Sequence record: LR756502.1
Length of the DNA: 64,000 nucleotides
Reading direction: 5' to 3' (one strand)
The notes under the pieces are model-generated. The model saw nothing but the letters and a program-made list of their open reading frames with translations. It ran no database searches and was not told the DNA's origin. This document shows, one piece after another, positions 10,792 to 38,714 of the stretch. Numbering within the stretch: position 1 is the first letter of the stretch; the number at the start of each line of letters is the position of its first letter. The translations under genes were made by a program, and so were the position numbers.

Positions 10792-13181
10792 TTCTTTGGT
10801 TCATTTAACTTTGTCTTATATGCATCTTTATTCTTATTAAATAAAGCTTTAAGATCATCTGGTAGGACAAATAGTTTATCCTCTTTATTCACAACCGCAT
10901 ACACCTTAGATATCCTTGTGAATTTTACAGCCTCTGGTTTTGAGTTAGCCTTGTCATTTTTATATTCCTCTAAGTTTAGAGATTTTATTTCCATCTCAGT
11001 TCCCTGTTTTATTGGAAATTTCCTATTAGGAATTCTAGCATAGTTTAATGGGTAGATAACATCATCTTTGTCTCTATCTAACTCAATAAAGTTTGGCAAT
11101 GTTCCCTTTTCCACCTTTATCACATTCTTTGATATGTTCTTGAATGGTAAAAATGTTTCTGAGTATTTAACATATACGTAATCAGCATCAGAATCTATTA
11201 CTGATAGATAGTATTGCTTATCCTCTGTTTTTATTGAGTAAATAGCTCCTATGATTTTAGGATCAATTTCTCTTGTATCCTTAAAAGAGTATTTCTTAAC
11301 CTCTTTAGTTTTTGCTGCAACTTTCCCATTAACCGTAGTATCATTCCCACCCTTTCCAGTATATCCTAGCTTATCTGATTGGACATCCACATCAAAGTAT
11401 TCTTGTATAAATTTAGATTGTGCTCCATTTTTATAAAGTTTACTACCATCCAACATAGAGTTTATAAATGTTAATAGGGCTTTTCCTCCACCTTGTTTCT
11501 TATTTTCTCCAGATACGTTAGCTCTTGTATCGGCCTTTCCAACTTTAACAACTGTATCTTGATTAAATAAAACCTGATATTTAGAATCCTTTACTATATC
11601 AAGAACTGCATTTTCCCACCTGTTGAATAGTGCCTTATTTCTCCATGCCCCACCTGTATTCTCAGTTGGTGCTTGACCTTCTCCTACCCAATCATACTCA
11701 CCTCTTGTTCTATTTGAAATTTTACCACCACTTCTACCAGAAGGTATTATCTCTGATGTGTGTAGTTTATATGCTCTATTGAATATTTTAACTATTTCTA
11801 CTATAGGATCAATTCCATCAATTACTATTCTAGTACTATCTTTTGTTAGCTTATTAATTTCCTCATCCAGTGATTTTTTCTCAACGTCTGTTATTATCCA
11901 TCTCTTCATGAAATCTGGTTGGAATATTTTCATCCAATTGGTTTTAAGATCCGATCCCATGTCTGTTTTTTTAGACTTTGGATCCTCTGTATCCTCTGTA
12001 TTAGAAACTTCCGGATCTACAACTTCTGTATCCGCTTCATTTATTGAAATAAATTTAGCATAATTGTATAATTCAGCAAATTTTTCATTTTTAGTCTCCT
12101 CCTTTGAAATTATTGCCTTCATACTTGTGTTGAATTTAGCAATTTCTGACTTCATACTATCATCTACTCCAGTAAAGTCACCAGCCTCTTTTGTCTTGGT
12201 TATATTATATAGCCCGATCAACTTAGCACCGATGTTTTCAGGCTTGGTTAGTAATTCAACTAAACTCTCATTAACAGACTTTCTTTTGATATAATCATAT
12301 ATCTTTAATATTGGTGATTTATTTTGCTCATTACCAATTAGATTATAAAATTCTTCCTTTCTTCTATTCTCATCCTCTGTGAAAGTAAGGTATTGTTTCA
12401 TATAGTCATATAACGGCTTGATTGCCTTAAGTAGATTTGGGTCAATCGCTGATAATTGTTCATTAATAGATTGACTAAATTCATTTGAATAAGACTCAAG
12501 ATTGCTTACTGGTAGAGTTTTCTTACCTTGAATAGGTTCCTTTACCTGTACTTCTTTAGCCACAACTGCTTTAGCTGGCACTTCTTTAGCTACTGGTGCA
12601 GAGCTCTTTTTTATTTTATCATACCCATATAATATATTATATGATGATGTAAAATTCTCTATCATTTTTGGTAGAAGAGATGATGAATCTGATATAGGCT
12701 GAGTAGTGACATCTCCTATTGATTCTAAAAACTCATTTAACTTAGCTAATAGTTCTTTTTTATCCTCCTCGCTCTCTGGTTGTACTTTTAGAATACTAAT
12801 TTCCTCTATTGTATTTTTGGCTACCTTTATAACTTCACTTTTTTCATCTCCTTTATCAACTGAATCCTTTAGTTTTCCTAATAAAGCTGATATTTTAATC
12901 ATATCAATCTTTTTTAGTACATCTTTACTTAATTCAGCTCCTTTTATTTTAGCGTCTGCTACCAAAGAGTCAAAAGACTCCTTCAATTTATCAATAACCG
13001 AGTCCATTTTGAATAGATTTACCCCTATCCCAGCCTTTCTTATGACAGAGTTTATAAGCCTTCCTAGCAAGGAATCTCCCCAGTTTATATCATTGGCCAT
13101 TGGGCCACTATCGGCCTCTTCTTTTATCAATGAATACTTGTTGTTTCTGATGAATTCTTCCCTTTGTTTTAGATATCTCAT
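10788..13181 (-). CDS. Putative internal head/ejected protein
   Basis: Begins MRYLKQREEF; internal SINE, SVNE, SINE sites resemble prohead-protease sites; late promoter upstream. Confidence 0.55.
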   Translation of the reverse strand: MRYLKQREEFIRNNKYSLIKEEADSGPMANDINWGDSLLGRLINSVIRKAGIGVNLFKMDSVIDKLKESFDSLVADAKIKGAELSKDVLKKIDMIKISALLGKLKDSVDKGDEKSEVIKVAKNTIEEISILKVQPESEEDKKELLAKLNEFLESIGDVTTQPISDSSSLLPKMIENFTSSYNILYGYDKIKKSSAPVAKEVPAKAVVAKEVQVKEPIQGKKTLPVSNLESYSNEFSQSINEQLSAIDPNLLKAIKPLYDYMKQYLTFTEDENRRKEEFYNLIGNEQNKSPILKIYDYIKRKSVNESLVELLTKPENIGAKLIGLYNITKTKEAGDFTGVDDSMKSEIAKFNTSMKAIISKEETKNEKFAELYNYAKFISINEADTEVVDPEVSNTEDTEDPKSKKTDMGSDLKTNWMKIFQPDFMKRWIITDVEKKSLDEEINKLTKDSTRIVIDGIDPIVEIVKIFNRAYKLHTSEIIPSGRSGGKISNRTRGEYDWVGEGQAPTENTGGAWRNKALFNRWENAVLDIVKDSKYQVLFNQDTVVKVGKADTRANVSGENKKQGGGKALLTFINSMLDGSKLYKNGAQSKFIQEYFDVDVQSDKLGYTGKGGNDTTVNGKVAAKTKEVKKYSFKDTREIDPKIIGAIYSIKTEDKQYYLSVIDSDADYVYVKYSETFLPFKNISKNVIKVEKGTLPNFIELDRDKDDVIYPLNYARIPNRKFPIKQGTEMEIKSLNLEEYKNDKANSKPEAVKFTRISKVYAVVNKEDKLFVLPDDLKALFNKNKDAYKTKLNEPKK

Positions 13182-13236
13182 AGAGGTATATATTTTGTTT
13201 ATTATAGACTATATATAAAAATTATATACCCAAAAA

Positions 13237-13268
13237 TTTGGTAGTATTGGTATTTTTTACTATATTTG
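13237..13268 (+). promoter_or_regulatory. Bacteroidota sigma-A-type promoter
   Basis: TTTG(13237-40)-N20-TATATTTG(13261-68). Confidence 0.75.
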
Positions 13269-13316
13269 TATAGTTGAATAAGTGATAATAATTAGAATTA
13301 AATAATTACTATATAA

Positions 13317-13348
13317 TTAGGTAATTTAAGTTATAATCCTTATATTTG
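13317..13348 (+). promoter_or_regulatory. Second tandem Bacteroidota-type promoter
   Basis: TTAG-N20-TATATTTG(13341-48). Confidence 0.6.
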
Positions 13349-13386
13349 TATTATAAGTTTAACCACATACTAAAACCACAAGGACA

Positions 13387-13770
13387 ATGAAAACATCTGT
13401 AATGTTAAAGGGAGTAGAAGTTAAGATTGGTGATGAAATTCGTTTCATTAATGATGCTGATTTATATGTTGGTGATTATGAGGGTGTTGATAATATCGTT
13501 AGACCAAAAGTTGGTAAGGTTTATACTGTAAGAGGATTCAGTGATAGTAATGGTTTCTACCTTACTGAAATTGTGAACAATACTATTCCAGTAGCTTTAT
13601 TTGGTTATATCGTTGATGTTGAACCAGGATTTGGTATCTGGCGTTTTGACCCAGCTAATCCATTGATTGCTGAAGTTAAAGAGTCTGCTAAGTCTAAGAA
13701 GAAGGTTAACATTGTAATCGCTCCTGAATTGAAAGAAACTCTTGAAGAAATTCTTGAATTTACTAACTAA
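13387..13770 (+). CDS. Hypothetical early protein (SH3-like N-terminus)
   Basis: 127-aa ORF between tandem host promoters and a terminator. Confidence 0.6.
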   Translation: MKTSVMLKGVEVKIGDEIRFINDADLYVGDYEGVDNIVRPKVGKVYTVRGFSDSNGFYLTEIVNNTIPVALFGYIVDVEPGFGIWRFDPANPLIAEVKESAKSKKKVNIVIAPELKETLEEILEFTN

Positions 13771-13793
13771 TTTTAATGTTTTTAATATATTGT

Positions 13794-13823
13794 AAAAAAC
13801 CGAGAGTGATCTCGGTTTTTTTT
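13794..13823 (+). terminator. Intrinsic terminator
   Basis: AAAAAACCGAGA-GTGA-TCTCGGTTTTTTTT. Confidence 0.85.
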
Positions 13824-13929
13824 GTTTAAATAATTTTAAATTATTATACCTCGTTTTTTTCAAAATTTCAATGGTGGTGGTTTTATCGGGGAAAAATACG
13901 AATATATACTTGAGTAAATTATAATTCAT

Positions 13930-14223
13930 ATGAAGTACTTAGAACTAATAAATGGTGATAAAAGATACACCAAAGAGTCACAGATTAACGAAATACTTTC
14001 CAAAAACAAATTTTATTGGCTAATAGACTCTGAAGTAGAGAACGCTATAATAGAGATTAAAAAAGATACTATTATTTGGCATGGTGGTGACTACTATGTT
14101 GGTAATTGGTATTATGGTATATTTAAAAGAGGTAACTTCTATGGTACATGGGAGGATGGAATATTTGAAAATGGCAATTTCGGTGGTAAATGGATAGACG
14201 GCATTAATCTTAAAAAGATATAA
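13930..14223 (+). CDS. Hypothetical protein with G-x-[WF]-x-x-G repeats
   Basis: GNWYYGIFKRGNFYGTWEDGIFENGNFGGKWIDG. Confidence 0.6.
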   Translation: MKYLELINGDKRYTKESQINEILSKNKFYWLIDSEVENAIIEIKKDTIIWHGGDYYVGNWYYGIFKRGNFYGTWEDGIFENGNFGGKWIDGINLKKI

Positions 14224-14238
14224 AAAATTATTATTACT

Positions 14239-14691
14239 ATGAGAAAGAAAAAAGTTGCTTTGAAAAGAGCACACGATGTTTATAATGATAGCATCGTTAA
14301 GATTAGTAGAGAACAAAATGAGTATTTTTTTGAAATTGGAAAAGAAATAACAACGGATGTGGGTGAAGCTGTATCTATGTTAATGAGACAAAAAGATATG
14401 TGGGATAGCTCGTTTTGGGATTTAGAAATAAAAAACATTTCTTATCATGAAATTTCACCAGAGAAAGCACTGTTTTGGTTAACAGGTGGGTATGCTGAGT
14501 GGAGAACATTAGAACACTATAACAAACCTTGGTGTGATAGTTATTTGGAATTCCAAGAAGAATTTGGAATACTTATAGTTAACATTATAAAAAGGTCTAA
14601 AAAATTAAAAGATATAAGAGACAACTTTATAAAATATTTAAGTCTTCCTGTCTTATATGATTTTGCAATCAATAAGAACTTGACTAAGTAA
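14239..14691 (+). CDS. Hypothetical protein
   Basis: 150-aa ORF in operon. Confidence 0.6.
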   Translation: MRKKKVALKRAHDVYNDSIVKISREQNEYFFEIGKEITTDVGEAVSMLMRQKDMWDSSFWDLEIKNISYHEISPEKALFWLTGGYAEWRTLEHYNKPWCDSYLEFQEEFGILIVNIIKRSKKLKDIRDNFIKYLSLPVLYDFAINKNLTK

Positions 14692-14693
14692 TT

Positions 14694-14721
14694 AAAACCC
14701 ACCTTATAAGGTGGGTTTTTT
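14694..14721 (+). terminator. Intrinsic terminator
   Basis: AAAACCCACCTT-AT-AAGGTGGGTTTTTT. Confidence 0.85.
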
Positions 14722-14738
14722 ATTTTAATATATAATGC

Positions 14739-15011
14739 ATGGAAAGAGCAGTTTGTAAAAATCCTTGGTGTAAAGCAACATTTGAATACAATGAGGAAGA
14801 TATGATAGTTGTTCCTGGTGATGTTAGAGAGTCTAAGATAGATAATATACTAGGTGAAGTTAAAAGAATACCACCACAACAGTGTAAAAAGTGTAAAAGC
14901 TTTGCTAACGATTTAAGTACTGGGGTTGAGTGGAAAGAAAAGAAGTATGAGGGTAGTAGAGATGATGGTATGCCTCACCAAATAAGATATAAAATTAATA
15001 AATTTTTCTAA
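14739..15011 (+). CDS. Zinc-ribbon protein
   Basis: CKNPWC and CKKC; internal RESKIDNIL motif. Confidence 0.6.
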   Translation: MERAVCKNPWCKATFEYNEEDMIVVPGDVRESKIDNILGEVKRIPPQQCKKCKSFANDLSTGVEWKEKKYEGSRDDGMPHQIRYKINKFF

Positions 15012-15860
15012 ATGAAGGCTCACTTTTTTGACATTGATGCACTAATGATAGTTGATAGTCAACCATGGATTGTTAGTAAAAGTAATCCAAATATTCCTAT
15101 TATGAAGATATCACAATCTGACTTTAACTTAAGTAAGAATGGTATTTACAAATCACATGGTAATAAAATAGATTTTAATGGTAAGATTTTCTGGTTATCT
15201 GATAACCTGATGCATAAACTAAAAGTTAAGTCGAAAAACCACAAGGTTGATATTTCTAATTTATCTATATCTATGCAAGAGTTTCTTAACAAAGACATCA
15301 TATCTAAAATAGACTTCAAGTTAAATATGGATGTAATTATGCCTATTAAAAATACCAATGATGATGTTTATGTAATCTGTTCTAGAAACTCTAAGAGAAA
15401 CTATGAAATTATTGTTGAGAAATTAGAGGAATCTCTTAAAGAGAATGGAATTCTAATAAAAAAATACTACTTTATATCTGATACATTCTATAACAGGAAC
15501 CATGATGAGATATCATATAAGAAGGTTAGACTACTTCTACAACATCTTATTGGATATAAAACAGATGGTAATAAATTCATAGATGAAGAACTTGATAAAT
15601 ATGATGAAATAGACTATTATGATGATGATAAACACTCTATTAATTTGGTAAAGGATTCAAATAAAATACTTCAAATATTTCTATCTAAGACTGATTCCGT
15701 TATTAAGTCAAAGATTAAAGATTCTTTAAAATCTAAAGAGAATAAGTTAGTTATAAATGAAGTTACTTCAAATGATCATAATAAGTTTATAACATCCAAG
15801 GTTAATATAGAGTATAGTAATTTGATAAAGGCTTTTGAAAGCTTTAAATTTGGAAAGTAG
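15012..15860 (+). CDS. Hypothetical protein, possible degenerate HAD fold
   Basis: N-terminal HFFDID, later YYDDD. Confidence 0.4.
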   Translation: MKAHFFDIDALMIVDSQPWIVSKSNPNIPIMKISQSDFNLSKNGIYKSHGNKIDFNGKIFWLSDNLMHKLKVKSKNHKVDISNLSISMQEFLNKDIISKIDFKLNMDVIMPIKNTNDDVYVICSRNSKRNYEIIVEKLEESLKENGILIKKYYFISDTFYNRNHDEISYKKVRLLLQHLIGYKTDGNKFIDEELDKYDEIDYYDDDKHSINLVKDSNKILQIFLSKTDSVIKSKIKDSLKSKENKLVINEVTSNDHNKFITSKVNIEYSNLIKAFESFKFGK

Positions 15861-15862
15861 AA

Positions 15863-16480
15863 TTAGTCCTTCTTCTTATTCATCGCATCTTTGATTAAAT
15901 CATTTAACTTTCTGTTATCGATTATTTCACCATCCTCTGATGAGGTTATTGCGTCTATTGACTTTTGTACATCTGGATTATCAGCAACTTCATTTAATCC
16001 TAAATCTTTTCTTAACTCTTTATAGAACTTCTCTAAATCAGTTCTTTGTGTTGATGAAAATTTTGAATTTTCTCTTATTTGTCCAATTGTTTGATTGACA
16101 ACCTCATGCATTCTAGCTGAGTTGTCTCCATTATCAACTTGTCTTAGTTGTGATAAGAAGTTTTTTCTTGTCATTTTTGATAAAAAAATAGACTCTGCGT
16201 AAACAAGAGCATCTTCTTTCATTTTATTTTTTATATAGGCATGTTGTTTTAGCTGAGGGACATCACTTAGGTATAGATCAACAAGAGATTCTAATACATT
16301 CATTGCTTGTTGTGATGATACTGTTAAATCCGCATCATAATCATATATTTCTATCTCTCCTAAATCTGGTAGATCCTCAGGTCTTGCAAGGTGTTGAGTT
16401 ATATCAAACTCTTTACCTTCGGATTGTATTTGTTCAAATTCATCCTGTATTCTATTTTTCTCATTTTCTGATTTTGACAT
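15863..16480 (-). CDS. gp16: Probable terminase small subunit, T4 gp16-like
   Basis: NSARMHEVVNQTIGQI resembles the gp16 SPR..EVF..LMGQM motif; divergent from TerL. Confidence 0.55.
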   Translation of the reverse strand: MSKSENEKNRIQDEFEQIQSEGKEFDITQHLARPEDLPDLGEIEIYDYDADLTVSSQQAMNVLESLVDLYLSDVPQLKQHAYIKNKMKEDALVYAESIFLSKMTRKNFLSQLRQVDNGDNSARMHEVVNQTIGQIRENSKFSSTQRTDLEKFYKELRKDLGLNEVADNPDVQKSIDAITSSEDGEIIDNRKLNDLIKDAMNKKKD

Positions 16481-16524: not shown

Positions 16525-18663
16525 ATGGCGGTTAAACAAAAACAAGAAATCATCAGACAGATGGTCTTTACAACAAAATTAGTTGATGAGGCCACTGAAA
16601 AGATTAATGATGGTATTGTTGTAAAGAGATATCAGAATCCTTGGTTGAAGAGTGAAGTTGGTCTTAAAAGAGCAGGTGTTTCATTTAAAATGACAACTGA
16701 TGAGCAGCAAGAATATGTAAAATGTGCACTTGATATACACTACTTCACTGAAAAGTATTGTCAAACAAAAACAGAAGATGGTAGTGTTGATAATATACTT
16801 CTGAGAGATTATCAGAAAGAAGTTCTTGATAATTTTATCAGCAATAGATTTAATATATTGATGGCTAGTAGGCAGGTTGGTAAGACAATAATGTCCTCCG
16901 TATTTATATTACATACTATTCTATTTAGTAATGATAAGAATATAATGATAGTAGCGAATAAGGGAGATACCGCAATTGAGATTGTTGATAAGATAAAGGC
17001 CATCTACTCACTATTGCCATTTTTTCTAAAACCAGGTATAAAGTTATGGAACCAAAAATCATTAACATTTGATAATGGTTGTAGAATAAAAACATCCGCT
17101 CGTACAAAGACACCGGCTATTGGTTTTACTATTGACCTTTTATTCCTAGATGAGTTTGCTCACATACCATCTAATATTATTGAGCCATATTATACCGCTG
17201 CATTTCCGGTTACATCAGCTGTTCAGAATTCAAAGATAATTATAACATCAACACCAAATGGTATGAATCTATTTCATAGACTTTTGAGTAATGCTGAGAG
17301 ACCATCCGGTGATCCTCAAAAGAATAACTATAAGGCGATGAGAGTATATTGGTACCAAGTTCCTGGTAGATTCGTTACATATCTGAGACTAAACCCACAT
17401 AAGTTATATGACTATGGTGTTACTAAGGAGGATATCTTTACTTTAATTAATGATACTTGGGGGTCTAAGACAACAGTAGAGATGAAGTTTATATTAGATT
17501 TACAGAAAGATGTTATCTATGTTTATAATAATGAGTTTTGTTCTGATGAGGCAATTAAATCAATGACATTTACTGATAAAGATGGTAACGAGGTTCCTAT
17601 TATGGCTATTGCTGAACTAACAACATGGAAAGAAGAAGCTATAAAGGATATTGGTGGTGAAGATGCATTTAACCAAGAGTATGGACTTAGATTTATTAAC
17701 TCAAGTAAGTCACTTTTAAATGAGAACTTGATAGATGATCTACTTAAACATAAGAGAAATTATATACATGAAAATATACAAGAGTTTGATAGGAAGATAA
17801 GATTTAGTTATGAGGATCTTAAATGGATTGATGATGATGAGGTATTTATGCCTATTAATAGAAAGGAAACAAAGGTAATATTGTCTGTCGATATATCAGA
17901 AGGGCTTGGACAGGATTATTCTATAATTAATATATTTAAGATATCTCCAAAGCCAATAGATCTAATAGATGCTCAGAAGATGTCATATAAGAGCATAGTT
18001 GACTTCTTTCGACTAGAGCAAATAGGTATTTTTAGAAATAACTTTGTTTCTGTTAAGCAACTTTCTGAGTTACTATATATGATTGTCTTTGAGTATTTCT
18101 ACTACGAGAATGTTAAGGTCGTTCTCGAGTTAAATAATTATGGTAATACACTGTTAGCTGAAATGCCACACGTTTTTGATGGTAATAATAACTATGGATC
18201 TTCTATATTCTTCAGATATAAACATAGAGCCGACTCACTTGATGAAAAGGTTGGACTAAAGGTTGGTGAGAATAAGAATCTTATGGTAAAAGACTACCAG
18301 GAGTTAATGCAGAACAAAGGATTTGTTATAACAAACGAGGATAATATTAGAGAAATAACAACATTTGTTAAACACGTAACAACATCAGGTAACATTAGAT
18401 ATGCTGCTGATAATGGTCATGATGATACAGTTATGACTGTTGTTAATACCACAAGTATATTTGCTAAGAGTGATTTCAGGGAAATTGTTGAAGATTATGC
18501 TAATAAAATGGTTGATAAATCATTTATGACATATGTAAATGAATGTTTAAAAACAATGGAGTATGTTGAGGGTGTTGATTATAGTCAAGTATTGAAGATA
18601 AGGAGGCAACAGATGAACAGGTATAAAGGAAATTCTAATAATAAAAATTGGTTTGATAGATAG
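16525..18663 (+). CDS. gp17: Terminase large subunit
   Basis: LRDYQ, ASRQVGKT (Walker A), LFLDEFAH (Walker B), TSTPNG, FNQEY, VDISEG, HDDTVM. Confidence 0.95.
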   Translation: MAVKQKQEIIRQMVFTTKLVDEATEKINDGIVVKRYQNPWLKSEVGLKRAGVSFKMTTDEQQEYVKCALDIHYFTEKYCQTKTEDGSVDNILLRDYQKEVLDNFISNRFNILMASRQVGKTIMSSVFILHTILFSNDKNIMIVANKGDTAIEIVDKIKAIYSLLPFFLKPGIKLWNQKSLTFDNGCRIKTSARTKTPAIGFTIDLLFLDEFAHIPSNIIEPYYTAAFPVTSAVQNSKIIITSTPNGMNLFHRLLSNAERPSGDPQKNNYKAMRVYWYQVPGRFVTYLRLNPHKLYDYGVTKEDIFTLINDTWGSKTTVEMKFILDLQKDVIYVYNNEFCSDEAIKSMTFTDKDGNEVPIMAIAELTTWKEEAIKDIGGEDAFNQEYGLRFINSSKSLLNENLIDDLLKHKRNYIHENIQEFDRKIRFSYEDLKWIDDDEVFMPINRKETKVILSVDISEGLGQDYSIINIFKISPKPIDLIDAQKMSYKSIVDFFRLEQIGIFRNNFVSVKQLSELLYMIVFEYFYYENVKVVLELNNYGNTLLAEMPHVFDGNNNYGSSIFFRYKHRADSLDEKVGLKVGENKNLMVKDYQELMQNKGFVITNEDNIREITTFVKHVTTSGNIRYAADNGHDDTVMTVVNTTSIFAKSDFREIVEDYANKMVDKSFMTYVNECLKTMEYVEGVDYSQVLKIRRQQMNRYKGNSNNKNWFDR

Positions 18664-18689: not shown

Positions 18690-19055
18690 ATGATAACTAA
18701 GTTCAGCTTATTCTTGGAAAGTATTGGTGATAAGACCGTTTATGATCAAGAAACACGTTCAATGACAGGTGCTTATAAGGTAATAAGTAATGATGGGGTT
18801 ACTACATCTATTGAAAACTATCAGGAGATTCCTGAGCTTAAAGGGAGTAGACCACTTATTTATATGGATGATAAATTATCTGGTATAAGAATAAAGAAAG
18901 TAGTCAATATACCATCCGACCAAATTAAAATTGGAGCAGACCTTGGTGATGGATATTTTGATATATCAATACCATATTTCATATTTAAAAAATATGACTC
19001 AGATCTAGAAATTAAAAAGCTAAGTGATCGATACCGAGTAAAGGATAAGGTTTAA
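18690..19055 (+). CDS. Hypothetical protein with capsid-targeting-like N-terminus
   Basis: MITKFSLFLE; late promoter AATATATA immediately upstream. Confidence 0.55.
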   Translation: MITKFSLFLESIGDKTVYDQETRSMTGAYKVISNDGVTTSIENYQEIPELKGSRPLIYMDDKLSGIRIKKVVNIPSDQIKIGADLGDGYFDISIPYFIFKKYDSDLEIKKLSDRYRVKDKV

Positions 19056-19333
19056 TTAATCTCCATTGTTGCTAACAATCCAGCAGAAGTTAATTTATCC
19101 TTCATATCAGATATTGTTTCCAAATCACCATATTTCACATCACATTGACCATTGAAGTGAATGATATGAGCACATTGTGATGCTTGTTCCTGTTCGTGAT
19201 TACATATCTTCATAAGACAACTGATTACATGGTCGAAACTATTGTAGTCATCGTTGTGAAGCATTAGTTTGTACGGATTTGATAAAATCTCTTCCACTTG
19301 TGAATCAGTTTTTGTTTTTGTAATAGTTGCCAT
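19052..19333 (-). CDS. clpS: ClpS N-degron adaptor (Bacteroidota-like)
   Basis: LMLHNDDYNSFDHVI...QASQCAHIIHFNGQCDVKYG...GLLA. Confidence 0.9.
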   Translation of the reverse strand: MATITKTKTDSQVEEILSNPYKLMLHNDDYNSFDHVISCLMKICNHEQEQASQCAHIIHFNGQCDVKYGDLETISDMKDKLTSAGLLATMEIN

Positions 19334-19356: not shown

Positions 19357-19881
19357 TTATTTGTTTTCAATTCTAGTTACTTTCTTGTTTATCACATCAA
19401 TAATATTAATGTCTGATCTTTGACCAACCGCCCATCTTTTGAATTCAACAAGGTGTTCATGTCTATCATCATACATTGTAAACTCTTTAACTTTAAGCTT
19501 TGCCATAGTTTCTTCAAACAATTTGGTCTTGAACTTGAATGTATCTCCTCCCCAATTTAAGTGTACTTCATCAAAGACTATGTTATTTTGCTCGAGGATC
19601 TTCTCTATATTTTTCCTCATATTTGGTACCTTTTGTAGACGTCCAGTTGCTAGTATTACGTATGCCTTTGGATCTGCTACAGCTTCCTTATATCTAGAAA
19701 GTACCCACTCATTAACTGGTATATAGAATACCTCTGTGCTTAGTGTCTCTGCTTTGCCCCACCAACCTGTGTGTGGAAATTCAAATCCAGTTTGTTCTCG
19801 CCATATTCTTCTACCCTCATGTGGTTCAGGTGAATGAAATAGTGTTCCATCAAAATCAAAGCAGTATAGTTTGTCGTACAT
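19357..19881 (-). CDS. HAD-superfamily phosphatase, Swiss-Army-Knife RNA-repair-like
   Basis: FDFDGTLFHSP...WW, LATGR, MYDDRHEH. Confidence 0.75.
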   Translation of the reverse strand: MYDKLYCFDFDGTLFHSPEPHEGRRIWREQTGFEFPHTGWWGKAETLSTEVFYIPVNEWVLSRYKEAVADPKAYVILATGRLQKVPNMRKNIEKILEQNNIVFDEVHLNWGGDTFKFKTKLFEETMAKLKVKEFTMYDDRHEHLVEFKRWAVGQRSDINIIDVINKKVTRIENK

Positions 19882-20411: not shown

Positions 20412-20969
20412 ATGAAGAAACTATTATTTGTATTTATGTTGTTATCATCAACAATGTTTTCTCAGGGCAAGACCTTCGGTGATTACCTACACCCATCCAC
20501 TAAGGCTAGGGAAGTTAATCAACTTAAATCAGATTACCCAAAGATTGAGACTGACTCAATGGGTATTAAAGTTGTTATTATGACGATTGAGCAAGCCCAA
20601 AAAATAGATAATAACTTGGATGTGCTTACTTTGTTAGAGAAAGCGGGTGTTCAATGTGATAGCCTTAACAAAGCATATCTAAAAGTTATTGATAACTTAG
20701 GTAAGCAAGTAAGTATATTGGAGTTAGATGTTAAAAAGTTAAAGGATCAGATAAAGGATAAAGATTTGCAAATATCAAACCTGCAAGATCGCCTAAATAA
20801 TGAGTCAATAAGTAATGGATTGTGTGAAGAACAGAAGAATAAAAAGGATGAGGAGATTAAATTACTAAAGAAGGAAGTTAGAAAGCAAAAAAGACAAAAG
20901 GTTGTTGGATTTATTGTTGGTGGCCTTGCCGCTGCTGGTGGTGTTTTTTTACTGATAGCTGGTATTTAA
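20412..20969 (+). CDS. Exported coiled-coil protein with C-terminal TM (spanin-like?)
   Basis: Signal peptide MKKLLFVFMLLSSTMFSQ, coiled coil, basic patch, then hydrophobic C-terminus. Confidence 0.4.
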   Translation: MKKLLFVFMLLSSTMFSQGKTFGDYLHPSTKAREVNQLKSDYPKIETDSMGIKVVIMTIEQAQKIDNNLDVLTLLEKAGVQCDSLNKAYLKVIDNLGKQVSILELDVKKLKDQIKDKDLQISNLQDRLNNESISNGLCEEQKNKKDEEIKLLKKEVRKQKRQKVVGFIVGGLAAAGGVFLLIAGI

Positions 20970-21029
20970 TTTGTAAAAAATGACTTTTAGAGTTTAATAT
21001 ATAAAGTACAAAAAATATTTTAATTATAG

Positions 21030-21584
21030 ATGAAGCATATTAGACAATTTGAAAGCTATCGTAATAGAAAACACAGAGAAGAGATTATTAGAGAATCAGT
21101 TCTTCAAGTTAATGATATCTACAAAGTAAAAGCAATGATTGACATTCCTAAGTCACTTATCAATTCTTATGTTAAGAAGGTAAAAGAAATAGGTGGTCAG
21201 GACTTAAGACAGTTTTTTGGTGATTATGATCTTGCTGAGGAAATTGTTAAGTATATAACATTAAACAACTTGGATGCTGATAAAATACCAGCTAATGCAT
21301 TGATGGGTGGTCCCGCTCAAGCACAAGCTCCACAAGCACAAACACAACAAGCTCCACAAGCACAAACACAACAAGCTCCAGAAGCACAAGCAGCACCGGC
21401 TCCAGAAGCACAAGCAGCACCAGCTCCAGAAGCACAAGCAGCAACAGCTCCAGAAGCACAAGCTCCACAAGTTCAGGTTCAAACTCAAACTGAAGGTGGT
21501 GAGAATGTAGGGGAATTTGAAGAGCCTAATGTTCAAACTGAAAAAGAGAAAGAAGAAGAAGGTGAAGAAGAACTTCCACTTTAG
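21030..21584 (+). CDS. Capsid-targeting-motif protein with Ala/Pro/Gln/Glu repeats
   Basis: MKHIRQFESY; APQAQTQQ and APEAQAAP repeats; acidic tail. Confidence 0.65.
   Translation: MKHIRQFESYRNRKHREEIIRESVLQVNDIYKVKAMIDIPKSLINSYVKKVKEIGGQDLRQFFGDYDLAEEIVKYITLNNLDADKIPANALMGGPAQAQAPQAQTQQAPQAQTQQAPEAQAAPAPEAQAAPAPEAQAATAPEAQAPQVQVQTQTEGGENVGEFEEPNVQTEKEKEEEGEEELPL
21316..21480 (+). repeat. Coding tandem repeats (GCTCCAcaagcacaa / GCTCCAgaagcacaa units)
   Basis: Direct repeats visible in DNA, in frame. Confidence 0.9.
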
Positions 21585-21604
21585 TCTAATCTAAATATAT
21601 TATT

Positions 21605-21631
21605 AAAACCCATCATATTGATGGGTTTTTT
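21605..21631 (+). terminator. Intrinsic terminator
   Basis: AAAACCCATCA-TAT-TGATGGGTTTTTT. Confidence 0.85.
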
Positions 21632-21649
21632 ATTTTTATATATACATAG

Positions 21650-22264
21650 ATGAAATACATTAAGACCTATGAGAACCATAATAATTCAACACTTATAATT
21701 GTTGATGTTCAGAAGTCATTTAGGAAATACTTCAATGAAATGTATCTTAATGAACTTAAGAAATACTGTAAAAACTTCCAAAATGTTTACCAAATTTGGG
21801 ATAATCATGTCGATGGTAAGAATGTTGATAAGGATTATCTATACCATAGTTCACCTGATATACCAGTACATGAGGATCTGTATGATTTTCCAAACCAAAA
21901 GGATATAATTGAGAAGAGATATAACTACGATGTTGATGTTGATTTCTATAAGAAGATATTAAGTAAGGAAACATATAAAGAAATAAAATCTAAAGAGAAA
22001 AAAAGTCTATTAAAGAAGGGTGATCTTTTTAGGACAAGTGAGGGTACCGCTATTGCTTATATAGGAAATAATCACCAATGGACACATGTTCCTAAGAAGC
22101 TACTCAGTCTTTTGGAGTCACTAAGGGGTATGAATGTTGTTATTGTTGGTGGTGCTGATGGTGAATGCTTAGAAGATATATTTGTGGTTGCTGAATCTAT
22201 TGGTGTTATTGTTAAGAGGGACTGGAAGTTCATTTATACCGCATCTCATTGTCCAATTCGATAA
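21650..22264 (+). CDS. Isochorismatase/cysteine hydrolase family protein
   Basis: TLIIVDVQKSF, IIEK, IVGGADGECL (D-K-C triad); N-terminus MKYIKTYEN. Confidence 0.75.
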   Translation: MKYIKTYENHNNSTLIIVDVQKSFRKYFNEMYLNELKKYCKNFQNVYQIWDNHVDGKNVDKDYLYHSSPDIPVHEDLYDFPNQKDIIEKRYNYDVDVDFYKKILSKETYKEIKSKEKKSLLKKGDLFRTSEGTAIAYIGNNHQWTHVPKKLLSLLESLRGMNVVIVGGADGECLEDIFVVAESIGVIVKRDWKFIYTASHCPIR

Positions 22265-22298
22265 CATTTCCATGAATTTTGCTTTTAATATATAAAAT

Positions 22299-22742
22299 AT
22301 GAGATATCTAAAAACATTTGAAAGTTTTGATTACGATACAATAGATGCTAATGAGGATGAGTATCTATATGTTCAAGAATCGCAGATTCCAAACTCCGGT
22401 AGTGGTTTATTTACAGCGATAGATATAGGTAAGGATGAGATAGTGTCAAAATTTATTGGTGAGGTTATATCAGAGGAAGAGTCACAAATAAGAGTTGATA
22501 ATGATGATGATCAATATTTTATGAGTCTCCCGTCAGGTGAAATGTTTGATTGTAAAAGAACAGATTGTTTCGCCAAATATGCAAATGATGCTGAAGGACT
22601 TCCCACAAAATTCAAAAATAATACATTTATAGGAATGGATGATGATGATAATGTTGTTTTAATAGCCAAGAGAGATATTAAAGCTGGTGATGAGATATTT
22701 ACTGGATATGGTAAAGAATATTGGGGTAAACACGGTATATAA
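22299..22742 (+). CDS. SET-domain methyltransferase
   Basis: GSGLFT, KYANDA, AKRDIKAGDEIFTGYG..YW; N-terminus MRYLKTFESF. Confidence 0.88.
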   Translation: MRYLKTFESFDYDTIDANEDEYLYVQESQIPNSGSGLFTAIDIGKDEIVSKFIGEVISEEESQIRVDNDDDQYFMSLPSGEMFDCKRTDCFAKYANDAEGLPTKFKNNTFIGMDDDDNVVLIAKRDIKAGDEIFTGYGKEYWGKHGI

Positions 22743-22752
22743 TTTTTGAAAA

Positions 22753-23847
22753 TTAAAGATTATCTATAAACTTATAAAGCTTTTTAACATATTCTCTTCT
22801 CTTATATTCTGGATTTGTCATAGTATATACAACAAATGAAAAGTAATTCATTTTCTCAATTAATAACTCCTTAGAGATATTACCTCCAACATACCTGAAC
22901 TCAACATAATTATTATCAAGTTTTGTAATATTAAATCCGAAGTTTTTGTGACCAAGCTCTTTAATCTTCCCTGTAAGAAAACTGTTTAATGTTTCTTCTG
23001 TTTCTTTTAGATTGTTTAAATCAATTGACCTCTTCAACTTTTCTATTACTTTACTATCTAGTGATTTTATTGCTGGTATTAAAGATCCACAGAAGTGACT
23101 ATTCATTCTCCATGTCATATCTTTGAATGTTAGAGGCGGTGCATCACCCTCGTTAAAATCATTTAACATAAGTAATCCCTTTATTGGGTTCCATTCAGCG
23201 TTATTATCATTTACTCCAATGTTTATATGTAGTCCAGTTTTTTCTGTAAATTTCCAATAGCTTTGCTTTTCTAAATCAGAATAAAAGTCGTTGATCATCT
23301 CTGTTCCCTCGGAAAGACCTACTAGATATGTTTTTGGCTTTATTTCTATACCTCTGTCCAATGTAACATCTTCAACTAAATCTATCTTTTTGGACCATTT
23401 CTTTATAAAGTTTGGTAGGTATTTTTTTGTTTGTTTTGTCATGTATAGTAGATCTGATTCAGCTATTTGACTCATTACGGCTGACTTAATAAACTTTACA
23501 ATTTCCCTTTCCCTATTACTTTCGTAATTATCTAGGTTGAATATTTTGACCATGTCTTCTTTTATAGTACCATCCTCATTCGCATCTACCAGTGATTGTA
23601 TAATGCTTTTAACTAGAGTTTTTTCAGATCTAGTCCTTATATCCATTTCGTGTTTTGTGCTACTTATTATATCATCAATATCATCTTCATCTTCCAGAAT
23701 ACTAAAGTCCATTTTAATGTTTGACTTATCATCCGTCTCTATCTCAAACTCAAATGATACTGTGAAATATTTATCCATGTTCTGGATAAATGATATATCC
23801 TTTGGATTTACTTCTTCAAAAAGAGAAAATTTAATAATGTGTTTCAT
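22753..23847 (-). CDS. Putative amidoligase (COOH-NH2 ligase type 2)
   Basis: SFEFEIE, GIEIKP, TGLHINIG, YVEFRYVGG; N-terminus MKHIIKFSLFEE. Confidence 0.75.
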   Translation of the reverse strand: MKHIIKFSLFEEVNPKDISFIQNMDKYFTVSFEFEIETDDKSNIKMDFSILEDEDDIDDIISSTKHEMDIRTRSEKTLVKSIIQSLVDANEDGTIKEDMVKIFNLDNYESNREREIVKFIKSAVMSQIAESDLLYMTKQTKKYLPNFIKKWSKKIDLVEDVTLDRGIEIKPKTYLVGLSEGTEMINDFYSDLEKQSYWKFTEKTGLHINIGVNDNNAEWNPIKGLLMLNDFNEGDAPPLTFKDMTWRMNSHFCGSLIPAIKSLDSKVIEKLKRSIDLNNLKETEETLNSFLTGKIKELGHKNFGFNITKLDNNYVEFRYVGGNISKELLIEKMNYFSFVVYTMTNPEYKRREYVKKLYKFIDNL

Positions 23848-23906
23848 GAATATTATATATTAAAAATTAATATATAATAAAATAATACAAAAATTTACCA
23901 GTGAAA

Positions 23907-24398
23907 ATGAAAGAAACTCGTATAATGAACTTTGGAACATTTGTTAATGAATCCTATGATTTTGAAGATTTTACAATGAATGATATGGAGTTTGTTAAAG
24001 AACTTTGGAATGATGGAATGACTGATACTGTTCAAATAGCAATTGAGTGTGATTTGGATAAACCAACAGTTGTGCAAATATTAGATACTCTTAAAAGACG
24101 AGGTGATATTAAAGATACTGATGGTGTATTGGAGTCTGAACAATTTGATGAACATGATGAGGAACATTCTGGGTGCGGTTGTCATATTTGTAACTGTGTT
24201 GGAGAATGTGAATGTGAATGTTGTTGTTCAGATGTTTCGGATATTAAGAGTTGTAAATGGTGTTATAAAGAATTTGAGCCAGAAAACAATTCTCAATGCT
24301 GTTGTAGTGAATGTGATTCAAAATATAATAACTATTTATCAAATGATAATTCAAAGACTCCTTGGAGTGATGATAAGTACAATTATCGAGAAAGATAA
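23907..24398 (+). CDS. Acidic protein with Cys-rich metal-binding C-terminal half
   Basis: CGCHICNCVGECECECCC...CKWC...CCCSEC; NFGTFVNE near N-terminus. Confidence 0.6.
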   Translation: MKETRIMNFGTFVNESYDFEDFTMNDMEFVKELWNDGMTDTVQIAIECDLDKPTVVQILDTLKRRGDIKDTDGVLESEQFDEHDEEHSGCGCHICNCVGECECECCCSDVSDIKSCKWCYKEFEPENNSQCCCSECDSKYNNYLSNDNSKTPWSDDKYNYRER

Positions 24399-24428
24399 AA
24401 AAAGAGTCAGATTATTCTGACTCTTTTT
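24399..24428. terminator. Bidirectional terminator
   Basis: AAAAAGAGTCAG-ATTATT-CTGACTCTTTTT between convergent genes. Confidence 0.8.
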
Positions 24429-24900
24429 CTTTTAATATATCATCAATTGCCTCATCTCTATGAATCTGTTTATAGTCAATAAACTCTCTAACCGTTTCTA
24501 AATCCGCAGAGACTGAGGAATTTTTTGAATTTATGACCCAATTTGATTCGTCCTTTAGACTAATTTGCCATAGATATATTGGGTTACCAAGATCCTCAAT
24601 TTGAACTCCATCTTTAATACAAAATTGGTTTTTCAATAAGTCATCTTTAACTGTAAAGTATCCTAATTTTGCATCATCATAAGATCTAACCCATATCTTC
24701 CATTTAGTAATCGATTGCTCAATGGTTTCACCATCTTTAAATATATATCCATGAATGACCGGATGTAGCCAGTCATTCAAAGAGGATATACTATCATCAG
24801 AATATACCTTAGCTTGTGTTGGATCCTGTGATTTACTCCAAAAGGTATCACACTTGAAGTGTTTTTTACCTCCCATCTCTACAAATAATAAAGCTCTCAT
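24412..24900 (-). CDS. Hypothetical protein with C-terminal RDxxIxxIL motif
   Basis: Ends HRDEAIDDILKEKESE. Confidence 0.6.
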   Translation of the reverse strand: MRALLFVEMGGKKHFKCDTFWSKSQDPTQAKVYSDDSISSLNDWLHPVIHGYIFKDGETIEQSITKWKIWVRSYDDAKLGYFTVKDDLLKNQFCIKDGVQIEDLGNPIYLWQISLKDESNWVINSKNSSVSADLETVREFIDYKQIHRDEAIDDILKEKESE

Positions 24901-24901
24901 C

Positions 24902-25306
24902 TTACATTCTGAATATTTTGGCTAAAATAGATTTCTTTTCCTCTGTGACTGGTATTCCAGAGACTATAGAGTTTGTGATTTTAGTAATTTCGGTTTTGTC
25001 TGTTTTTTCAGAAATCGCCTCTTTAATTGTAGATACTTTTTCCTTCATTGTTTTGAAATTTTTTGTGGATTTTAATTCTTTGTTCAAAAACAAAATATGC
25101 TTTATTACACATTTTGCGTTCCCCTCATACCAGCTGATATATTGGTCAATGTCATAGATTGTTGTCTTATCACCATTAAGAACGATGATATTATTGCCCT
25201 CTACAAATACTTTATAGAGTTCTCCATTTTTCTTTACGAATAAATGTTTTGATGTTTGTTCTAAGTAATTTAATACTTCTGTTTTGATTTGTTCTTTTGT
25301 TTTCAT
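24902..25306 (-). CDS. Hypothetical protein
   Basis: 134-aa ORF in the PTH2 operon. Confidence 0.6.
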   Translation of the reverse strand: MKTKEQIKTEVLNYLEQTSKHLFVKKNGELYKVFVEGNNIIVLNGDKTTIYDIDQYISWYEGNAKCVIKHILFLNKELKSTKNFKTMKEKVSTIKEAISEKTDKTEITKITNSIVSGIPVTEEKKSILAKIFRM

Positions 25307-25317
25307 AGTTTTTAGTT

Positions 25318-25782
25318 TTATTTTTTTAGTAATTGATTTATTTTTAATTCTCTTTTGTAACTTCTTTTGAATTCAAAATCGCGCCCTAGTAAATTTTCTA
25401 GGAAGTCCTTTATAAACTCTACATTTTTTAGTCTTATATCAAATATGTGATCTACTCCTTCCCATCTATCTTCTCTATCGGAAAATGAACATCTATCTAA
25501 AATATCATTATATTCAATAACTCCAGATTCTGTCCTGTATACACTATACTGAGCACGACCACTCTTATTTTCAAATATATAGTAGGATCCATCATCATAT
25601 ATTACATGGTAGTGTTTGTCTCTATTTGGTCCATCTGATATACTATACACTCCTTCAAATACATCACTTATCCAAATATCACATTGTTCATTATATGAGT
25701 ATTTTTGGTCTATTCTATCTTTGTCTGGTATCAATCCCTCTGATTTTAACCACTCGATTGATTTTTTATTAAATGGCCACAT
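25318..25782 (-). CDS. Hypothetical protein with C-terminal RELKINQLL motif
   Basis: Ends KRELKINQLLKK; start overlaps the PTH2 end. Confidence 0.6.
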   Translation of the reverse strand: MWPFNKKSIEWLKSEGLIPDKDRIDQKYSYNEQCDIWISDVFEGVYSISDGPNRDKHYHVIYDDGSYYIFENKSGRAQYSVYRTESGVIEYNDILDRCSFSDREDRWEGVDHIFDIRLKNVEFIKDFLENLLGRDFEFKRSYKRELKINQLLKK

Positions 25783-31127: not shown

Positions 31128-31493
31128 ATGTACTTAAATAATAAAGATTTGTATGTAGAAGTGATAGTATCAAAAGCACAAGGGAAACTTACTAGAAGCG
31201 CTGAAAAAATGTTGGAGCTACTTGCTAAAAAGACAATAAAGAAAATGAGATATTGGTCTAATGATGATAAACTTGATTGTTACCAAAGTGGTCTTTTAGA
31301 TATGTTTCAAAACTGGTATAACTTTAATGAATATAAGAGTGTTAATGCATTTGCATACTTTACTGAAGTTTTTAAGAGAGGAATCGCTAAGGGATATAAC
31401 GAACTTTACAAGAAGAAAGGCGATAACGAACATTTAATAAAACTAATATCTATTGAGGGTTCAAATGATGGAATGGGATTACACTCATTATAA
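31128..31493 (+). CDS. gp55: Late-transcription sigma factor, T4 gp55-like
   Basis: YLNNKDLY, NFN, NAFAYFTEV. Confidence 0.85.
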   Translation: MYLNNKDLYVEVIVSKAQGKLTRSAEKMLELLAKKTIKKMRYWSNDDKLDCYQSGLLDMFQNWYNFNEYKSVNAFAYFTEVFKRGIAKGYNELYKKKGDNEHLIKLISIEGSNDGMGLHSL

Positions 31494-32052: not shown

Positions 32053-33150
32053 TTAATTTTCTATAGTCTCTTCAATGTTCGAATATACTGTTTTAAGCAT
32101 TTGATTGGCGACTAAGTATGGGTCACAATTTGAAGATGGTCTTCGGTCTTCAAAGTAACCTTTTTTATCCACAATAGACTGAGCCGGTATTCTAATACTT
32201 GTATCTCTAGTGCTGTATCCGAAGCTAAAGTCATCAATTCCTGATGTCTCATGTTCGCCAGTTAATCTTTCCTCATTATGTAGTCCATATACTTTAATAT
32301 GCGCTTTATGACTTTTTTCAAGTTTATGCATTGTACTTTCTATAATATCTATTCCGCCTTCCACTCTCATTTCTTTTGATGAGAAGTTAACATGGCATCC
32401 AGTTCCATTCCAGTCACCTCTGACTGGTTTGGGATGTATTGATACATTAACATTATGTTTTTCAGCAACCCTTTGTAGTAAATATCTTGATATCCATAGT
32501 TGATCAGCTCCTATTAATGCTGGTACTGGTCCAATTTGATATTCCCATTGTCCTAATAATACTTCAGCATTTATACCAGATATCTCTAGTCCAATTTCCA
32601 TACACACATTCATGTGTTCTTCTACGATTTCTCTACCAACAACACTATCATATCCAACTCCGCAGTAATAATCTCCTTGTGGTCTAGGATGTCCGGTTGG
32701 TCCTTGAGCAAATCCCAAAGGAATTCCATTTCCCTCACCGAAAGGAGCATTTGGTTTATGAGTTAGTGTGTATTCCTGTTCCCATCCGAACCATGGTAGG
32801 ATGTCTATTGACTGGTCTTCTGTTATTTTAAGATCTTTAACTTTTTTGGAAAGGATATGTCTATTATTACTTGCATGTGGTGTTCCATCCGGATTCAAAA
32901 CTTCACACATAACTAATCTACCATTTTTTCTAAATGGGTCTTCGGTTACAAATACCGGCTTTAATAAACAATCGGTATTATTGCCTTTACCAGACTTTGC
33001 TTGATTAGTGGAACTACCATCAAATGACCAAATTGGATAATCTTTTGGTAAAAAAGTATCCATTTTAGAAACTATTTTTGTCTTACTCCTTATCTGTTGT
33101 GGGTTGTTCCCATCTAACCAAATGTACTCTAGAGTTATTTTAGTATTCAT
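32053..33150 (-). CDS. glnII: Glutamine synthetase type II
   Basis: LEYIWLDG, WSFDGSST, WFGWEQEY, GINAEVLLGQWEYQIGP, DWNGTGCH, RLTGEHET, YFEDRRP. Confidence 0.95.
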   Translation of the reverse strand: MNTKITLEYIWLDGNNPQQIRSKTKIVSKMDTFLPKDYPIWSFDGSSTNQAKSGKGNNTDCLLKPVFVTEDPFRKNGRLVMCEVLNPDGTPHASNNRHILSKKVKDLKITEDQSIDILPWFGWEQEYTLTHKPNAPFGEGNGIPLGFAQGPTGHPRPQGDYYCGVGYDSVVGREIVEEHMNVCMEIGLEISGINAEVLLGQWEYQIGPVPALIGADQLWISRYLLQRVAEKHNVNVSIHPKPVRGDWNGTGCHVNFSSKEMRVEGGIDIIESTMHKLEKSHKAHIKVYGLHNEERLTGEHETSGIDDFSFGYSTRDTSIRIPAQSIVDKKGYFEDRRPSSNCDPYLVANQMLKTVYSNIEETIEN

Positions 33151-38293: not shown

Positions 38294-38714
38294 ATTCTAA
38301 GTAGAATCCTCCGTATGGTGAAATCATTCCGTTTATATATGATATTTTAAGTTGTAACTCAATATCGCTGTTTATTATATTTTCAATTATTTCCCCATTG
38401 AGCGTTTCCATTGTTTCAATAATTATTGATAATTTTTCAACAATATCATTTTTTATTATAAATGTCATTGATTTAACTTTGAATGATACCGTTGAATTAG
38501 CAGCAAAACGATCTGGTTGTCCAGTTGTTCCGTATAGAGGATTGCCTTTTACTTCCGTTATATCAAACTGGGTTCTTTTACTACTATCTAGTATGTTATT
38601 TATCAGTATATCCCTTTTGAAGGAATTGAACTCAGGCATTCTCTCCAATATTGTGTAGAATGATGAAAATTTACTTGATATATCATCTAATTGTAACTCA
38701 AATTTCTTTTCCAC
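38292..38714 (-). CDS. Hypothetical protein with internal RDILINNIL motif
   Basis: 140-aa ORF. Confidence 0.55.
   Translation of the reverse strand: MEKKFELQLDDISSKFSSFYTILERMPEFNSFKRDILINNILDSSKRTQFDITEVKGNPLYGTTGQPDRFAANSTVSFKVKSMTFIIKNDIVEKLSIIIETMETLNGEIIENIINSDIELQLKISYINGMISPYGGFYLE

Follow-up and report, generated by a model that had tools for sequence, protein, structure and literature searches.

The locus described here raises the question of what three adjacent genes of an uncultured huge phage encode, and why their products all start with a common leader of approximately twelve residues. The analyzed stretch of DNA (the window, 64,000 nucleotides (nt) in length) represents bases 186001–250000 of LR756502.1, a 642,428-bp unannotated record labeled as "uncultured phage"; positions given below are those of the window unless stated otherwise. 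Genome-wide counts refer to bases 1–642000 of this record, rebuilt from 12 loci and the window. Gene A (21650–22264, plus strand) encodes a protein of 204 amino acids (aa), gene B (22299–22742, plus strand) one of 147 aa and gene C (22753–23847, minus strand) one of 364 aa. All three open reading frames (ORFs), which an initial annotation had proposed to encode late-expressed enzymes with capsid-targeting-like N-termini, were confirmed. The observation underlying that proposal was found to reflect a broader pattern than reported, in that a short N-terminal leader is carried by a considerable part of the phage proteome. Loading of the leader-bearing proteins into the phage head is proposed as a tentative explanation of this feature.

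A short N-terminal leader recurs across the phage proteome

Genes A, B and C each start with a leader of the type M-K-[HY]-[LI]-K-x-[YF]-x-x-F-E (MKYIKTYENH in A, MRYLKTFESF in B and MKHIIKFSLFEE in C), which covers residues 1–12 of A and C and residues 1–10 of B. In a census applying an iterated position-specific scoring matrix (PSSM) to every ORF N-terminus of the rebuilt genome at a score threshold of 2.1, the leader M-K-[HY]-[LI]-K-x-[YF]-[NKE]-[EIL]-[FS]-E-S was detected on 153 of 952 ORFs (16%). Only 19 of 3708 internal methionine positions (0.5%) scored as leader, and the ORF scores showed a bimodal distribution. These counts bear out a common leader, whereas the likeness to a capsid targeting sequence (CTS) that had initially been noted does not extend to a score for that of phage T4. 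A shorter variant, M[IK]xK[KR][YF]xxF[IV]xE, adds further carriers, resulting in a total of 16–20% of the proteome. Approximately 60 tagged genes, i.e., genes encoding the leader, are located within the first 100 kb of the record. Moreover, long tandem arrays of small tagged ORFans were observed, for example at record positions 11122–16154, 20622–25572 and 419029–421860, in which ATGA start/stop overlaps are frequent. A literature search yielded no description of this leader.

The spread of the leader across genomes was counted using a strict DNA pattern, which gave 57 hits in LR756502 (with one hit in the reverse-read control), 53 in LR745206, 33 in LR756504 and 13 in LR756500. The same pattern gave no hits in Lak-B5, PTm1, PAU, MaF61 and MA9V-2 and none in LR756501. 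The latter phage, a 735-kb relative, uses a shorter variant with one residue less (MIKKYGQFLNEL and MKVIKFSDYLKES, LR756501 positions 451967–460506), which indicates divergence of the leader between clades that share 51% capsid-protein identity. The nearest relatives were determined by means of the major capsid protein; identity to other huge uncultured phages amounts to 76% for LR745206, 51% for LR756504 and LR756501 and 36% for LR756500; identity to Lak phages is 30%, and cultured jumbo phages of Bacteroidota and Sphingomonas (PTm1, PAU, MA9V, MaF61) reach 25–27%. The leader is retained across phages with only 36–76% capsid-protein identity. Whatever its mechanism, a peptide present on 16–20% of the proteome in at least five huge-phage genomes represents an unexplained organizing principle. 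As determined by a sequencing-run search, the source DNA was detected solely in freshwater and lake metagenomes.

Judged from its codons, the leader is under selection at the peptide level. Histidine is encoded by CAT (32) and CAC (37), leucine by TTA (53), CTA (27), CTT (10) and TTG (7), and the codons for Lys5 and for glutamate occur at genomic ratios. An origin of the leader as a promoter cassette at the DNA level, or by gene conversion, was ruled out, since different synonymous codons are used and the leader is also present where the promoter is missing. After removal of the first 15 residues, the 153 tagged proteins were distributed over 133 BLAST clusters including 123 singletons, which rules out that the leader is merely the conserved N-terminus of one paralogous family. 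The short leader is the sole common feature of these diverse proteins. Among the 76 largest of them, Pfam matches were confined to lysozyme, T4 Rnl1-type ligase, HNH nuclease, PQ-loop and DUF6576. Structural and house-keeping proteins encoded in the window, including those for replication and transcription, lack the leader, and membrane proteins account for 3.9% of the tagged versus 10.9% of the untagged proteins.

Comparison with homologues and inspection of structure models indicate that the leader is an add-on outside the enzyme fold, that is, a portable and phage-clade-specific peptide. In fusion proteins carrying the A domain at their C-terminus, the leader occupies the new N-terminus, and the A domain is matched from profile position 9–10 onwards. 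Distant homologues of A are devoid of the leader and start with MGKVLVIVDVQ directly at strand 1. Regarding orthologues of B, 36 of 38 phage proteins are tagged, the other two representing mis-called starts, versus none of 82 bacterial proteins, which start approximately ten residues later. Furthermore, B-type genes that abut A and have no promoter of their own still keep the leader. In the models, residues 1–12 of C and residues 1–7 of A have a predicted local distance difference test (pLDDT) score below 50, and the leader appears disordered directly before the first structured element.

Predicted functions of the three gene products

The initial annotation had assigned A, B and C to cysteine hydrolases, SET methyltransferases and amidoligases, respectively. 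Assignment of B is upheld by a hidden Markov model (HMM) of the SET domain and that of C by a glutamine synthetase (GS) fold, while that of A is moderately supported only.

Following its leader, B encodes a bona fide SET domain as judged from profile matching, and is predicted to be a methyltransferase. The protein matched the Pfam SET family PF00856 with an E-value of 2.3e-11 and 44.5 bits (cut-off 22.4), covering model positions 1–105 of 105, and the blocks GxGLFT, CFAKYANDA and GDE..YG are at least 95% conserved in 120 phage and bacterial homologues. B thus resembles the small bacterial and viral SET-domain lysine methyltransferases over the full model, its core being 52–61% identical to proteins of Flavobacterium and Winogradskyella, with identity to SET proteins of Flavobacterium amounting to approximately 60%. 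The 38 closest homologues (at least 60% identity) are located on phage-type contigs, and the next 82 (52–61%) are encoded on chromosomes of Flavobacterium, Winogradskyella and other Bacteroidota. All of these bacterial homologues lack the 10–12-residue leader that the phage versions have. This distribution, together with the common core blocks, points to acquisition of B from a Flavobacteriia-type host by host-to-phage transfer.

Based on four weak lines of sequence and model evidence, A is probably an isochorismatase-like cysteine hydrolase, the divergent domain of this type following residues 1–12. A candidate triad consists of D19, K89 and C173, which are conserved in 69, 69 and 66 of 73 diverse family members, respectively; K122 and K123 were rejected as the catalytic lysine, as they are not kept family-wide and K89 is. 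A shares the conserved Asp-Lys-Cys order as well as the strand-1 motif hhhVDxQxxF with isochorismatase-like hydrolases and PncA (PF00857), and differs from them by an insert of approximately 80 residues between strand 2 and the Lys region. Profile alignment by means of hhalign against E. coli EntB, YcaC, PncA and RutB resulted in a score of 30.6 (P 5e-4, probability 30%), compared with scores of 9–16 for 30 column-shuffled nulls. In this alignment, D19 is placed on the catalytic Asp and C173 on the catalytic Cys, and the segment GGAxxEC173L, GGAxxEC[LV] in the family, corresponds to GLATDYCV of PncA.

In the structure search, approximately 20 of the top 50 rows were isochorismatase or nicotinamidase chains with Z-scores of 4.8–5.8, nicotinamidases ranking first at 19–20% identity, as obtained with a poor model (pLDDT 65). 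Foldseek returned nothing for this low-confidence model, and HMM searches of A and of C against sequences of the PDB gave noise only. A language-model search (Atlas), made via a homologue, provided a lead of 0.86 to a viral cluster with PF00857 in 17% of its members. As judged by clustering, A represents a new and compact family, which comprises more than 1200 clusters at approximately 70% identity; at 50% identity, a search among 1.84 billion representatives yielded only 173 clusters, essentially all of them viral or metagenomic. One metagenomic relative of A, P0270 (622 aa), combines a Tad3 anti-Thoeris domain (PF25185, E 8e-34) with the C-terminal half of the A domain. This single fusion hints at chemistry related to nicotinamide adenine dinucleotide for A.

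For C, neither Pfam and PHROG nor PDB sequences provided a match, and 32 members of its family matched no Pfam model, including Gln-synt_C, GCS2 and Amidoligase_2, at E-values up to 5. Its confident AlphaFold model (pLDDT 85.6) displays the fold of the GS catalytic domain. The closest structural matches were a GS (Z 11.3, 201 aligned residues, root-mean-square deviation 3.7), gamma-glutamylmethylamide synthetase (GmaS, Z 10.9) and human GS (Z 10.8), and glutamine synthetases as a group reached Z-scores of 11.3–9.7. Weaker matches were obtained for YbdK/GCS2 (Z 8.6), Dop (Z 8.1) as well as PafA and GCL (both Z 7.4). In the Foldseek search, every top row was a GS, with probabilities up to 0.98. 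The amidoligase assignment made initially therefore stands at the superfamily level, but C is not a member of Pfam Amidoligase_2.

The fold is common to C and the GS, GCS2 (YbdK) and PafA-Dop ligases over residues 14–364 of C (Z 11.3–7.4), and the C family has the invariant pattern E-x-E ... E ... H ... E-x-R. Its invariant residues are E33/E35/E37, E168, H207/N209 and E316/R318, which, as judged from GS motifs, are putative equivalents of the metal and ATP ligands of GS. C differs from GS in having no N-terminal beta-grasp domain and in possessing an additional helical-bundle insert at approximately residues 46–130. We interpret C as a carboxylate-amine ligase that is active, ATP-dependent and the representative of a new sequence family, preceded by a leader that is disordered in the model. 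A and C each represent an enzyme family that lacks annotation and occurs widely in freshwater viromes. Another GS-like gene, separate from C and without leader, was observed at 32053–33150 (minus strand); the N-terminus of its product resembles type II glutamine synthetase, and its only match is a PHROG of unknown function (phrog_21628, E 3e-22).

Late-type promoter motifs precede A, B, C and many other tagged genes

Each of the three genes had also been credited with a late promoter of its own, and this is supported: a late-type motif common to virion structural genes was found 4–6 nt before each ATG. In front of A, TTTATATATA is located at 21635–21644 (plus strand, 5 nt before the ATG), with TATATATA at 21637–21644. 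B is preceded by TTAATATATA at 22285–22294 (plus strand, 4 nt before the ATG), which includes TAATATATA at 22286–22294, and C by TAATATATA at 23854–23862 (minus strand, 6 nt before the ATG). In total, 25 copies of TAATATATA occur in the window, where 6.5 are expected. Genome-wide, 58% of strictly tagged genes and 20% of other genes have [AT]ATATATA in the 60 nt preceding them, the background being approximately 2%.

Two spacing classes were distinguished, which have the extended motif TTAATATATA and an upstream A-tract in common. In the short class, comprising A, B and C, the motif stands 2–10 nt before the ATG; it includes 76 of 153 tagged and 64 of 799 untagged genes. The long class, with spacings of 14–34 nt, comprises ten tagged and 76 untagged genes, including those for portal, protease, capsid, sheath and terminase. 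A single AT-rich 8–10-mer thus precedes the virion structural genes, and the window encodes a gp55-like late sigma factor (31128–31493, plus strand; phrog_234, E 9.7e-6) as candidate reader of the motif. This protein was found by the PHROG profile; T4 gp55 as a single query retrieved nothing in the phage. Sigma-70 promoters were ruled out as an explanation, as their sites are fewer than in shuffled sequences. Since the motif is common to structural genes, a gp55-like factor is encoded and sigma-70 sites are not enriched, the motif is supported as a gp55-type late promoter, from which late timing would follow. By analogy with T4 late promoters, the mRNAs of the short class, including those of A, B and C, are probably leaderless.

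Loading into a T4-type prohead as a possible role of the leader

That the leader loads proteins into a T4-type prohead is a tentative proposal. Capsid targeting is nevertheless the best available explanation, and delivery of A, B and C by the capsid would be a reasonable analogy with the T4 CTS. Internal proteins of T-even phages have only the CTS in common (PMC3012670). In T4, this sequence (IPI, IPII, IPIII and Alt) is an N-terminal leader of approximately ten residues and the sole shared feature of its carriers, as is the leader described here. Further likenesses are a T4-type head with gp20, a gp21-like protease and gp23, late expression, which is presumed here, and a Glu ending the leader. 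The T4 ipI product starts with MKTFKEF, compared with MK[HY][LI]Kx[YF] in this phage. However, the motif differs, approximately 150 carriers stand against a handful in T4, and many of the leaders lack [IL]-x-E. The two systems are thus likened in logic and not in sequence.

The corresponding prohead machinery is encoded in the window. It comprises a T4-type portal protein (gp20; 36545–38260, plus strand; PF07230, E 1.3e-57), a head-maturation protease fused to a scaffold-like region (39272–41371, plus strand; phrog_207, E 6e-28) and a T4-type major capsid protein (gp23; 41452–43167, plus strand; PF07068, E 3.7e-28). Within the protease gene, positions 40181–40599 consist of approximately ten tandem 42-nt (14-aa) repeats of the type SEY[IL]AENLDKNI.Y. 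In its sequence, this tract looks like a scaffold segment built from repeated [IL]-A-E units similar to protease sites, and [IL]-A-E in each repeat resembles the T4 cleavage site as well as EFIAE of the T4 CTS. Regarding the leader, Glu is present at residues 8–12 in 85% of tagged proteins (untagged, 29%), and 44% have an [IL]xE that ends by residue 16 (untagged, 16%), with a peak at residue 11. The leader of C contains LFE.

According to the proposed course of events, A, B and C would be functional enzymes, namely an isochorismatase-like cysteine amidohydrolase, a SET methyltransferase and a GS-fold ATP-dependent carboxylate-amine ligase, which would be transcribed late from gp55-type promoters near their ATG. 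The amphipathic leader of approximately 12 residues would serve as a sorting peptide directing cargo into the T4-type prohead, and some leaders may afterwards be cleaved off by the Glu-specific head protease. Packaged in the virion, the enzymes would act either within the head or when the next infection begins. In encapsulins (cargo-loading peptides) and bacterial microcompartments (encapsulation peptides), short amphipathic terminal peptides also sort unrelated enzymes into a protein shell; this is an analogy only, as the shell systems and the sequences differ from those of the phage. Prohead loading, cleavage and delivery, like the substrates of the three enzymes, are what we infer from these comparisons.

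A wider generalization, in which Mahaphage-type huge phages load well over 100 proteins via a dedicated N-terminal cargo peptide, with host-derived enzymes (SET methyltransferase, nicotinamidase-like hydrolase, GS-fold ligase) among them, so that the virion delivers a pre-made takeover proteome and the leader acts as a programmable packaging tag, appears rather doubtful. Should the leader be a packaging signal, sequence data would suffice to list the proteins injected by uncultured huge phages. A phage would then convert a host enzyme into virion cargo by adding 12 residues, and foreign proteins could be loaded into large capsids by means of a compact tag.

A number of observations weigh against delivery of the three proteins as enzymes in the capsid. 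The leaders of A (TYE) and B (TFE) contain no [IL]-x-E site, and T4 ipI, ipII and ipIII score −10.9 to −13.7 on the leader PSSM, far from the threshold applied, i.e., they show no likeness of the T4 CTS to the leader. Approximately 150 cargo species are unprecedented, and the tagged set, with 16–20% of the proteome, includes the Rnl1-type RNA ligase, the HNH nuclease, the lysozyme and the PQ-loop match. Moreover, tagged proteins are acidic, in contrast to the basic internal proteins of T4, and the C orthologue of LR745206, like some other C orthologues, has no leader. The family assignment of A rests on weak signals: the protein has no Pfam match (E 0.1), and the PF00857 HMM matches nothing in the whole phage record at an E-value of 10. 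With approximately 70% identity over more than 1200 clusters, A looks like a conserved core gene and not like a fast-evolving injected effector, being far more conserved than typical injected counter-defense proteins. In addition, the sequencing-run search retrieved the locus from DNA metagenomes only and from no RNA runs.

Some of these features would also be expected if the leader were a peptide signal unrelated to capsid loading, which would bind a common partner of phage or host origin (e.g., a chaperone, protease or adaptor) or address another compartment, setting the stability, timing or location of accessory proteins that act in the producing cell. We regard this as a genuine possibility, while leaning against it. 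The scale and the functional mix of the tagged set are more in keeping with a general regulatory tag than with a list of cargo, the tagged proteins are acidic and soluble, A is very conserved in the manner of a core intracellular function, and the leader has no T4 CTS score. A ClpS adaptor is also encoded 2.3 kb upstream; it is a candidate partner only, and ClpS recognizes N-terminal Leu, Phe, Tyr or Trp in the N-degron pathway, which does not fit the Met-Lys start of the leader. Furthermore, replication and transcription proteins lack the leader, which therefore does not mark phage proteins in general, and the prohead is the only proteinaceous compartment evidenced in the genome. A purely translational role, in which the first codons or the nascent peptide aid initiation on leaderless or coupled mRNAs and sorting plays no part, would account for the association of the leader with short-spaced motifs (76/153 tagged versus 64/799 untagged genes), for the start-proximal bias of codons 2–4 and for the AT-richness of the leader (0.78 versus 0.73). 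Such a role is nevertheless very unlikely in view of the position-specific amino-acid conservation with mixed synonymous codons. The 64 genes with equally short spacing have unrelated N-termini, those of very large proteins among them, 65 tagged genes lack such a promoter, and the leader is kept across phages whose capsid proteins have diverged to 36–76% identity.

A variant that retains prohead loading, and is counted within the estimate for it, regards A and C as conserved enzymes of morphogenesis or virion modification that work in the prohead without being injected, B being a later insertion; the ligase would attach a group to a head protein or to DNA by an amide linkage, while trimming of this group would fall to the hydrolase. 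Conservation of the order TerL-ClpS-HAD-...-A-C-baseplate in LR745206 and independent contigs, the approximately 70% identity of A over more than 1200 clusters and the absence of the SET gene between A and C in LR745206 are in line with this variant. Its substrates, however, are hypothetical, A and C are transcribed convergently and do not form an operon, and the leader of C is dispensable in some lineages. Overall, a confinement of A and C to such a role seems improbable. Loading of tagged proteins into the prohead, whether for use in the head or for delivery, remains the explanation preferred here.

Genomic neighborhood and further features of the window

Based on its gene content, the window is a T4-type morphogenesis region. 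In addition to the head genes, it encodes the tail sheath (6321–10172), the large terminase (16525–18663), a gp25-like baseplate wedge protein and a clamp loader. The gene order TerL-ClpS-HAD-two membrane proteins-tagged Gln/Pro-rich protein-A-(SET)-C recurs in LR745206 and three independent contigs. As LR745206 has no SET gene between A and C and one contig has an extra gene at this place, A and C appear to be conserved neighbors, with the SET gene occupying a variable slot.

The gene directly upstream of A (21030–21584, plus strand) encodes a tagged Gln/Pro/Ala-rich repeat protein (MKHIRQFESY), which is the conserved upstream neighbor of A in all relatives seen. Its tail consists of tandem APEAQA units, with the DNA repeat located at 21320–21471. 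A terminator-like hairpin at 21605–21629 (plus strand), composed of an 11-pair stem followed by a T run, closes this gene before the promoter of A. Further upstream, the ClpS adaptor homologue (19052–19333, minus strand; PF02617, E 1.6e-18) and the adjacent HAD_SAK_1 phosphatase gene (19357–19881, minus strand) are kept beside the terminase gene in relatives. On the other side, a variable block between C and the baseplate gene, absent from LR745206, includes a gene whose small product has a segment extremely rich in Cys (CGCHICNCVGECECECCC...; 23901–24398, plus strand). Within the head module, a second peptidase of 458 aa adjoins the capsid gene (43975–45351, plus strand; phrog_4191 'peptidase', E 3e-64), and a homing-endonuclease-like gene (38714–39097, minus strand; phrog_12131, E 2e-10) is located between the portal and protease genes.

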